Source of the DNA: Octopus sinensis
Taxonomy: Eukaryota
Assembly (NCBI RefSeq): GCF_006345805.1
Contig: NW_021824729.1
Location: forward strand, 1 to 17,832
Reading direction: 5' to 3'
Length of the DNA stretch: 17,832 bases
Part shown: one piece after another, positions 4,836 to 6,930 of the stretch
How positions within the stretch are numbered: the stretch's first letter is position 1
Layout of the letters: every line of letters begins with the position of its first letter
The notes under the pieces: generated by a model
The model's input: only the letters and a program-made list of their open reading frames with translations
The model's database searches: none
Told to the model about the DNA's origin: nothing
Position numbers and translations under genes: made by a program

Positions 4836-6930
4836 ATGTATTCCAATAAAAAGCAGCAATGCTCAGCAAAGCGATAAAGTTTGAACTCCCTTCCACAGTC
4901 GAGGTGGAGCGATCAGCCTTTGTCACCATCCAAGAATCCCAGCTCTTTGACCAGTCGGGGATACAAGAAAATGGACTGGCAGACATCCGAATGGTAAAAA
5001 CACGGCAAACTAAGAAAGGGCTGTTACAACCCATCCATGCAATGTCGGACGTGTGGTCTGAACATTGACGAGTGTCCCGGCCATTTCGGTGTGCTAAAAC
5101 CATCACTGCCAGTCCTCAATCCACGATTTTCTGGGCACATCCTGAAGACGGTCAAAAGTGTGTGCAAGATGTGTGGACACATTCTCCTGGGGAATAAAAA
5201 GACCTTCAGTCACATCAAAAAGATGGAAAAGAGTCTCAACTACCTGCAGAAGAAGACAGAGACGCACAAATTGGAGGGGAGTGAGGATATTGTCTGCCAC
5301 AACTGTTTCACTGTGTGGTGTGGATTTATTGGCAGGAAAGGTCAAGAAACACACTCCTCTGAACATCCTGGAGGCTCACCTCGAGCGGATCACCTCCTAC
5401 GACACAACCCGACACGTGAATGCCCTTAAAACTGCTCATTCCTCACAAAAAGTGCGCAATGCTTTGAAATGTGGGACTGCCCTCAACTCGGTCGAGCTGT
5501 TCAATATTTTGTCGAGGATATAGTGGGCGATTTGGTTGAGTTGAAGGACTTTGGACTGATTGCGGGGAATGTGAGGAGCAGGACTCGGACGGAGAACATG
5601 TATTTCCGAGCAGTGCCTCCATTCGTCCGGCTGTCACATCCTCTGACGAGTGAGTATTGGATTGACCAGTAGGAAACGGCAAGACGACCTGACAGTGAAA
5701 TTAATGCACGTCATGTCCCTCAACGACTACTTTGCATACCTCAACATGACATTCATAAAGCAAATGGTTGTCCTCTCTGTGGATTGCAGACCATCTACCT
5801 CACATTGCAATACGAGTGTTGCATCATGATTAATATGGCCAGCATCCCCAAGGAATACAAACCACCCAAACTCGTGAGGTCATACTTCACTCGCCTGAAA
5901 GGCAAGCAAGGACGTTTTCGGGGTAACGGGAAGAGGGTGAACGGGGAGGACTGTCATATCGCCCGACCCGGAATAGACCAAGTGTCAGTCCCCCAGATAT
6001 TGACGTATCCCGAGTGTGTGAGGGACACCAACATTGAGGAGAAGACTAATAGTGCGGCGGCAACACCCCTCTGCTGTGATGATTTACAAGGCGAATGGGC
6101 GATCAGTGTAGGGGGACTGTTTGACTGTAGTAATCTGCGGTACGGGGAGGTGGAACAGAGGGCGTGTGATTTGCGAGTGGGGGATAGAGTGTTGAGGCAT
6201 ATTAGGGGACATTGTCAATCGACAGCCCTCTCTCCACAGGGAGAGCATTCATGTGAGGACTGTCTTGACATCGTAGTTCAAGATTGGCAACCAGAGGACA
6301 CTCCGATTCAACGAGTGTTGTTATACTCCCTTCAATGCTGACTTTGATGGAGAGCCTTTGACGGCAGAAATACAGGATTTCATTAGTGGTAGTCCCTCCG
6401 CTCATTACAGGCCTGTATTTGCTCACCAGGAAGGACGTGTTCTTGACGAAACCCCAAGTGGTCTCACTGTTGAATGCAATGAGGGGGTCAAGAAAGTGTC
6501 CTCCAGTCCCCCAACCCGCTATTCCGAGACCGGTGACTTTGTGGACTGGGAAGCAGATGATGAGTTACCTCCTCAGTCACCCCACTGAGTCGAATCAACA
6601 CATCTCCGTCAACATCCAGGCCAAAGGGAAGAGTTATTCGGGCAATGAAGAGTTGTATGACTCGTGTTGGCAAGTAGTTTGATGGGTAGACTGCTACATT
6701 GACGACTCGGAATTGATTCCGGGCATTCTCGACAAGAACTCGCTCGGCTTGGGGAGTAAAACAAACATTTTCTACTACATCCGACGAGAGTACGGGGCTG
6801 AGACGACTGTCCAGTGTATTGCCCGTCGATTGGCTGTGGCTTTTTTGAGTATTTGGTGGTTGACACGCGCAGTGCTGAGACTTGGTTTTACTGTGAGGTT
6901 GGCGGATGTCGTGCTCAGTTCGGCCTCCAA
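4836..6930 (+). pseudogene. POLR3A: RNA polymerase III largest subunit (RPC1/RPC160), N-terminal half, heavily mutated
   Basis: D.RM|G..C.TCG....CPGHFG (clamp Zn), [19 protein letters not shown] (KQGRF is RPC1-type rather than RPB1 or RPA1), [62 protein letters not shown]. Introns at 4994-5018, 5650-5672, 6253-6276 and 6389-6410. Many indels; ends at ~6930. Confidence 0.93.

Follow-up and report, generated by a model that had tools for sequence, protein, structure and literature searches.

A mosaic of RPC1, POLE and Hobbit fragments with miniature introns, probably produced by deletion-biased pseudogene decay in a dicyemid-type genome

In contig NW_021824729.1, of which a stretch of 17,832 nucleotides (nt) was analysed (hereafter the window), a copy of the gene for RPC1, the largest subunit of RNA polymerase III, lies next to fragments of POLE and Hobbit (FMP27/BLTP2), and its conserved motifs are interrupted by short multi-base deletions. 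These lesions are most probably the result of neutral, deletion-biased decay of a mosaic of non-processed pseudogenes, in a dicyemid-type genome with introns of ~24 nt. Homology to the parent families, disabling lesions and retained introns, three of the marks of a non-processed pseudogene, are present. The mosaic consists of the following fragments:

4835-6910, forward strand: non-processed RPC1 (RNA polymerase III largest subunit) pseudogene fragment, family residues ~13-713
6928-7251, forward strand: POLE thumb-domain fragment, human residues 957-1056 (PF22634, E=3e-14; human POLE, E=3e-15)
7272-11487, forward strand: Hobbit/FMP27/BLTP2 pseudogene fragment, residue ~815 to the natural C-terminus (PF10344, E=2e-32)

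All three are read from one strand and are separated by ~15 nt (RPC1 to POLE, 6911-6927) and ~20 nt (POLE to Hobbit, 7251-7271). As their order is that of a 5' end, a middle and a 3' end, it fits internal deletions in one contiguous segment. About 30 introns of 19-37 nt have been kept over the three fragments, which would therefore have been copied as DNA and not through mRNA. It is proposed that these fragments, which represent RPC1 by its 5' half, POLE by 100 residues and Hobbit/BLTP2 by its 3' 60%, were copied at the DNA level, that the three genes may once have been adjacent in a duplicated segment, and that two kilobase-scale internal losses probably joined them. With the loss of selection, the copies would have collected neutral substitutions, a few stop codons and many insertions and deletions (indels), deletions of 1 nt, 5-15 nt and 45-99 nt foremost. 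Ordinary replication slippage or end joining may have produced these lesions, and the same deletion bias may contribute to the tiny introns. At the POLE-Hobbit junction (7251-7271), a 21-nt segment begins with GT and ends with CAG, and both fragments are in one frame across it; the segment resembles a hybrid intron, which may be a coincidence.

The RPC1 copy was compared with a profile of 32 RPC1 proteins from animals, fungi, plants and protists, using a dynamic-programming aligner of our own in which frameshifts and GT..AG introns of 16-61 nt are allowed. In a homologue search all of its matches are RPC1 proteins (E values down to 5e-54, 33-39% identity), and against the profile it scores 627 and is collinear over ~690 columns. 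In its best conserved part the reading frame changes twice within a short distance: the segment 5892-5942, ending in GKRVN, is in frame 0 and is followed by a single spare base (5943); GRTVISPDP (5944-5970) is in frame 1 and is followed by two spare bases (5971-5972); and IDQVSVP-Q-ILTYPE (5973-6014) is back in frame 0. The lesions identified in the copy are as follows:

5609-5623, forward strand: two losses within the LLVPPVPIRPSV motif, one of 6 nt at 5609 and one of 7 nt at 5621-5623, the latter flagged as reliable
5927/5928, forward strand: deletion of 6 nt, from the profile alignment
5943, forward strand: deletion of 5 nt, one base in place of two codons (FS)
5971-5972, forward strand: deletion of 7 nt, two bases in place of three codons (NLx)
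~5993-5996, forward strand: deletion of 12 nt, one codon (5994-5996) in place of five
6042-6060, forward strand: frameshift of -2 nt (6042) and deletion of 9 nt (6060), with moderately conserved flanks
~6200-6204, forward strand: deletion of 5 nt in RHMEDGDIV, flagged as reliable
6216/6217, forward strand: deletion of 6 nt removing LF, flagged as reliable
6346-6354 (~6348), forward strand: deletion of 99 nt (33 codons) with the junction FNADFDG/EPL, in the reading FNADFDG-EPLTAEIQDF (6331-6387)

All 32 references are ungapped in the columns of the four-deletion block (356-402), in those holding both the ~6204 and the 6216 sites (456-480) and in those of the 99-nt deletion (506-550). The four losses of 6, 5, 7 and 12 nt between 5927 and 5993 had been read from the sequence in a preliminary description, and their sizes are reproduced here. 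So is the loss that it placed in GDIV(--)NRQPSLH at 6216, just upstream of which the additional 5-nt deletion is found. A further gap proposed in IN(--)MAS near 5834 falls where RPC1 is poorly conserved, and the case for it is weak. The 99-nt deletion had been omitted, and several frame changes taken for lesions are introns of 22-29 nt. A canonical G-quadruplex-type motif, GGGG-TAAC-GGG-AAGA-GGG-TGAAC-GGGG, was also noted on the sense strand at 5916-5947; it covers two of the four clustered deletions, which shortened its loops.

The damage falls on residues that RPC1 proteins seldom lose. Within columns conserved at 95% or more, 20 of 120 residues (17%) are missing from the copy, compared with 0.5% on average when each real RPC1 is left out and scored in the same way. 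At 83 invariant columns the copy has kept 63 residues, substituted 6 and deleted 14; the substitutions thus amount to 6 of the 69 invariant columns still present (8.7%, or 12% at the 95% threshold), against 1.4% in real RPC1s. The 99-nt deletion turns NADFDGDEMN...NGEPL into NADFDGEPL, so that the catalytic motif NADFDGD lacks its third Asp and the helix that follows it is gone. In addition, the copy contains at least seven frameshifts that introns do not account for, and it ends at residue ~713, after which POLE begins.

Approximately ten GT..AG introns of 22-29 nt, eight clear and two doubtful, interrupt the RPC1 copy, the first of those below having the form GTGAGT...CAGTAG and all of them coming from the intron-aware alignment:

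5650-5672, forward strand: retained mini-intron, 23 nt
4838-4866, forward strand: mini-intron
4994-5018, forward strand: mini-intron
6108-6130, forward strand: mini-intron
6253-6276, forward strand: mini-intron
6389-6410, forward strand: mini-intron
6666-6689, forward strand: mini-intron
6849-6872, forward strand: mini-intron
5318-5335, forward strand: doubtful intron
5523-5546, forward strand: doubtful intron

When each of them is excised, either the frame is restored or an in-frame stop disappears; the removal of 6389-6410, for example, joins IQDFISG to LYLLTRKD. Altogether 8-10 introns are counted in RPC1, 1-2 in POLE and ~22 in Hobbit, and their size class is that of a live DDX42 gene, which is described below.

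The POLE fragment carries an in-frame TAG stop (6961-6963) and a 24-nt GT..AG intron (7168-7191), which is the single gap in its alignment. A loss had been suggested for it in the form L(--)LYSK at 7002, but this was a misalignment: HMMER aligns human POLE 957-1036 to the window across 7002 without a gap, and LLYSK pairs with SVAKVAD rather than with VLYSK. For Hobbit, references were collected by an exhaustive search with one Hobbit open reading frame (ORF), followed by tblastn and alignment, while a word-index search with the stitched Hobbit pieces returned no match. In this fragment VVFPFNYNFDACF at 7297 matches the family sequence IFPYKYNFAEAF, and the match continues to the C-terminus at 11487. 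Its 4.2 kb contain ~22 mini-introns (19-37 nt) and are broken by in-frame stops at two places, ~8265 and ~9497. The nine frameshifts are all of 1-2 nt, the 5-7-nt class being absent. A lesion of the RPC1 type had also been proposed far downstream, in a zinc finger:

16366-16444, forward strand: BED-type zinc-finger remnant of a hAT-like transposase, from a three-frame reading

In this remnant PLCL is read in frame 1 and is followed by one base (T) and then by GTIFSNEAMKPS; the residues GTIFSNEAMKPSRLIEHLKRKH follow in frame 2, after the single base. At ~16378 the lesion fits a loss of 5 nt by which the second Cys would have been removed, as had been claimed for ~16377. The assignment to hAT elements is weakly supported by a zf-BED match at the Pfam threshold (E=5e-4, after X and Cys were restored at the gap as a test) and a hAT dimerisation match (E=0.017).

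As frame-shifting events cannot be lineage-specific protein indels, only these were counted for the indel spectrum. In RPC1, Hobbit and the hAT zinc finger combined, deletions of this kind number 13, of which six remove 1 nt, two 2 nt, three 5 nt and two 7 nt, and insertions number five (1, 1, 1, 2 and 2 nt). Deletions per substitution amount to ~0.15-0.25, from ~14-24 deletion events and an estimated ~100 substitutions over 2 kb, which is well above classical mammalian estimates; in Drosophila, Petrov and colleagues reportedly obtained values in the ~0.15 range. A deletion bias is thus present but not extreme: the preliminary description was right in its direction, with 13 deletions to five insertions, and not in suggesting that it could be unusually strong, since it is near that of Drosophila. 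Nor did two other parts of that description hold. Lesions of 5-7 nt are not a general class, because the frameshifts of Hobbit are all of 1-2 nt and the POLE example is void, and four deletions within 70 nt are no significant cluster if the 14 better-supported events are assumed to be spread uniformly (P=0.26). The block at 5927-5996 is the most conserved one and deletions are easiest to detect there, so that its "dense signature" is that portion of the decay which falls in the best-conserved and most alignable part of RPC1. That the miniature introns are linked to the deletion bias is plausible.

Evidence on the genome from which the window came is provided by a retrotransposon and its relatives:

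576-2755, reverse strand: 5'-truncated non-long-terminal-repeat (non-LTR) retrotransposon, a long interspersed nuclear element (LINE) with apurinic/apyrimidinic (AP) endonuclease and reverse transcriptase (RT) domains (Pfam) and an (AAT)n tail
VCDQ01001009.1 10230-12864, reverse strand: LINE copy, from DNA comparison
VCDQ01001009.1 ~7300-9200, reverse strand: LINE copy, from DNA comparison

In a homologue search the LINE ORFs of the window are 90% identical to a protein annotated in Octopus sinensis, and the contig that encodes it is VCDQ01001009.1 (509 kb; GCA_006345805.1), deposited as Octopus sinensis. The window LINE and the copies on that contig share 98.5-99.2% DNA identity, and their flanks are unrelated to the window. 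The copies differ by seven indels of 1 nt, the majority next to short homopolymers, by one 2-nt (TA) indel and by one 455-nt deletion, the last lying in the window LINE at ~1163 (reverse strand) and corresponding to VCDQ01001009.1 11829-12275. At its junction there is an exact 3-nt CAC microhomology within an imperfect direct repeat matching at 9 of 12 positions (CACAAAAAGAAG / CACGAAAAACAG).

The same contig also encodes a DDX42 orthologue, whose alignment to human DDX42 spans 417 residues (E=1e-162) and which has all helicase motifs. When it is aligned in the same way as RPC1, nine GT..AG introns (24-32 nt) are recognised, and there are neither frameshifts nor deletions over 1.25 kb of coding sequence. 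Octopus genes are not known to have introns this small. Because the intact DDX42 of the linked contig has introns of 24-32 nt, both this contig and the window probably derive from a dicyemid parasite of the octopus. Myxobolid myxozoans and Dicyema japonicum are the only animals for which introns shorter than 30 nt have been reported (PMC13644364). D. japonicum lives in the kidney of Octopus sinensis, and its genome comprises 67.5 Mb with 36.7% guanine plus cytosine (GC), 49% repeats and many LINEs (PMC6736024). Its introns are very short (mean 38 bp), with medians below 30 bp reported for dicyemids (PMC6736024, PMC6543705, PMC13644364), and circular DNA is abundant in Dicyema sp. (PMC6543705). 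An octopus origin of the window, with inserts from the parasite, was also considered and judged less likely, as the linked contig has an intact DDX42 with mini-introns. The 509-kb contig deposited as Octopus sinensis is seemingly parasite-derived.

The window is eukaryotic nuclear DNA of uneven composition, with an island of 45-51% GC at ~5000-10500 and flanks of 27-40% GC. Outside the mosaic, the LINE and the zinc finger, it contains:

11-595, reverse strand: glycogen phosphorylase fragment (PF00343, E=1e-63, profile positions 447-611)
~3860-4330, reverse strand: second RT fragment (GFRRGRST..., YADD), unrelated to the LINE (RVT_1, E=1.5e-5)
15442-15756, forward strand: isolated RGS-domain ORF (PF00615, E=1.8e-5)
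16615-17460: hAT-like remnants with a perfect tandem duplication, two units of 423 bp at 100% identity

The glycogen phosphorylase fragment (~550 nt) keeps its reading frame, has no indels and contains a single intron, of 24 nt (164-187); it ends upstream exactly at the (AAT)n tail of the LINE; upstream exons beyond the LINE were not found in the window. It is either much younger than the RPC1 copy or truncated in a different manner. The second RT fragment and the RGS-domain ORF are both situated in AT-rich parts. On the minus strand of the 423-bp unit there is an ORF, the source of the weak match to the hAT C-terminal dimerisation domain mentioned above, and the exact repeat is due either to tandem duplication in the very recent past or to faulty assembly.

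Several other explanations of the missing residues have to be weighed. It is barely conceivable that the RPC1-like sequence is a functional, derived paralogue with tolerated lineage-specific gaps. Dicyemid proteins are fast-evolving, and an ORF of 185 codons is open in frame 0 at 5784-6341, but conserved motifs including FNADFDG lie in frames unlike those of their neighbours through shifts that do not come from introns, the last Asp of NADFDGD is gone with the next 32 residues, and the gene halts at residue ~713 to run into POLE. Sequencing or assembly errors, such as those of a long-read consensus, are a highly improbable source of the lesions. Single-base errors are plausible in this material, given the seven 1-nt indels between LINE copies, mostly near short homopolymers; the RPC1 lesions, however, are of 5-12 and 99 nt and lie outside homopolymers, so that the preliminary description was correct in setting them apart from homopolymer sequencing error. 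They are accompanied by substitutions of invariant residues and by stop codons in POLE and Hobbit, and the phosphorylase and POLE stretches of the same window are free of indels. Above all, the live DDX42 on the LINE-linked contig is free of lesions under the same method over its 1.25 kb of coding sequence and nine introns, and hence the RPC1 lesions are neither alignment artefacts nor assembly errors. A giant-virus or horizontal origin of RPC1 and POLE was set aside as well, since the matches are cellular and the mini-introns are of the same class as those of the other genes.

Explanations that invoke a particular mutational process come closer to the evidence. It has been considered that microhomology-mediated end joining (MMEJ), or end joining by polymerase theta, prevails in this lineage and underlies the loss of pseudogenes as well as the shrinking of introns, as had been suggested from the sequence alone. 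In RPC1, deletions of 5-12 nt are far commoner than those of 1-2 nt, the hAT finger adds one of 5 nt, and the sole junction with a known parent, that of the 455-nt LINE deletion, has the 3-nt CAC microhomology; moreover, the 99-nt deletion is bordered on both sides by a G(D/E) codon pair, where up to 5 nt of microhomology would be possible. A precedent exists in Oikopleura, which is said to lack classical non-homologous end joining, to use MMEJ and to have a compact genome. Hobbit, however, is twice as long and has only frameshifts of 1-2 nt; the pooled sizes of frameshifting deletions fit a generic heavy-tailed spectrum; templated insertions were not seen in the event table of RPC1, Hobbit and the hAT finger; and 3 nt of microhomology at one junction is expected by chance in ~6% of cases, this being a single case. 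The two microhomology hints are compatible with slippage and with microhomology-mediated joining alike, and are too few to count as evidence. On balance MMEJ dominance is unlikely, and slightly more doubtful is a dicyemid germline with distinctive microhomology- or polymerase-theta-based repair, possibly tied to its circular DNA. If such a regime existed, it would rapidly remove pieces of 5-100 nt from unconstrained DNA and join distant gene fragments, the same regime would have shrunk introns to ~24 nt, and the locus would be a readable record of it. A somewhat better, yet still modest, chance may be given to the capture and stitching of separate fragments as filler DNA, by a gene-capturing transposon or through re-integration of circular DNA, with the small deletions arising afterwards or at the same time. 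The very tight junctions, a POLE piece of just ~330 nt, the abundance of circular DNA in Dicyema sp. (PMC6543705) and the many other truncated pieces in the window (phosphorylase, two retroelement fragments and hAT remnants) would all suit such a process. All three fragments nevertheless share a single orientation, their order of 5' end, internal part and 3' end is what simple internal deletions leave, and neither terminal inverted repeats nor transposon ends flank 4835-11487. A search for element termini around the mosaic returned only a 17-nt AT-rich inverted pair (88%; 4720 and 11546), which is probably due to chance, Helitron termini not having been specifically searched.

The proposed decay of a non-processed mosaic has close relatives among known systems. 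Deletion-biased decay has reportedly been measured in Drosophila by Petrov and colleagues and in C. elegans by Robertson. In the dead-on-arrival non-LTR elements of the former and the pseudogenes of the latter, deletions likewise exceed insertions and range from 1 to ~100 nt and probably to kilobases, and the retention of introns, the frameshifts, the stops and the loss of catalytic residues are alike. The present locus differs from both in that the host introns are ~24 nt, that the pieces fused head to tail come from three essential genes unrelated to one another, and that 5-7-nt events are over-represented relative to 1-2-nt ones in RPC1 alone, a small sample. With Oikopleura dioica, where MMEJ or polymerase-theta-mediated end joining (TMEJ) operates, it shares a small, fast-evolving genome, very short introns and short multi-base deletions in neutral DNA, whereas the neighbouring Hobbit pseudogene has mainly 1-2-nt indels. 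Processed pseudogenes also occur as dead housekeeping copies beside LINEs; unlike them, the mosaic has retained ~30 introns and has no poly(A) tail, and it is not a retrocopy.

A number of observations nonetheless weigh against neutral decay of a duplicated segment in a dicyemid genome. The duplication itself has to be assumed, as an intact parent gene was not retrieved: the best database match to RPC1 in the word-index homologue search has 39% identity, and the 120 best matches of that search are all shorter than 772 residues (RPC1 has ~1400). Its selection of candidates seems to prefer fragments, and in principle a full-length close relative may have escaped it. An exact look-up of ten window ORFs in the protein collection found none of them. 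Similarly, that the window and VCDQ01001009.1 belong to one assembly would follow from a single common LINE. The pseudogene introns in RPC1, POLE and Hobbit are GC-richer (mean 0.45 versus 0.30, P=2e-4) and slightly shorter (median 24 versus 26 nt, P=0.006) than those of DDX42, the only control gene in this comparison; a GTGAGT start is found in 5 of 31 pseudogene introns and in none of the nine of DDX42. The age of the copy, put at a nucleotide divergence of perhaps ~4-5% since constraint was lost, takes account of invariant-column substitutions only. Moreover, four of the seven frameshifting deletions of RPC1 are of 5-7 nt and Hobbit has only events of 1-2 nt, a size difference that is not obviously predicted by a uniform neutral spectrum; unequal age or a different sequence context of the two fragments may be responsible, the RPC1 cluster lying in a G-rich, G-quadruplex-like stretch. 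Decay is also uneven across the window, with phosphorylase (~550 nt) and POLE (~330 nt) free of indels.

At face value, the RPC1 copy is an otherwise ordinary pseudogene, and its interest comes from the genome in which it decays. This one locus suggests a ratio of deletions to insertions of ~2.6:1 in events and far higher in bases. It motivates a genome-wide survey and is by itself insufficient to settle whether deletion bias or selection is the cause of intron and genome miniaturisation, a question on which the neutral indel spectrum recorded in such pseudogenes could provide a test. As only two animal lineages have been reported with introns shorter than 30 nt, a spectrum of this kind would be of value as a calibration.

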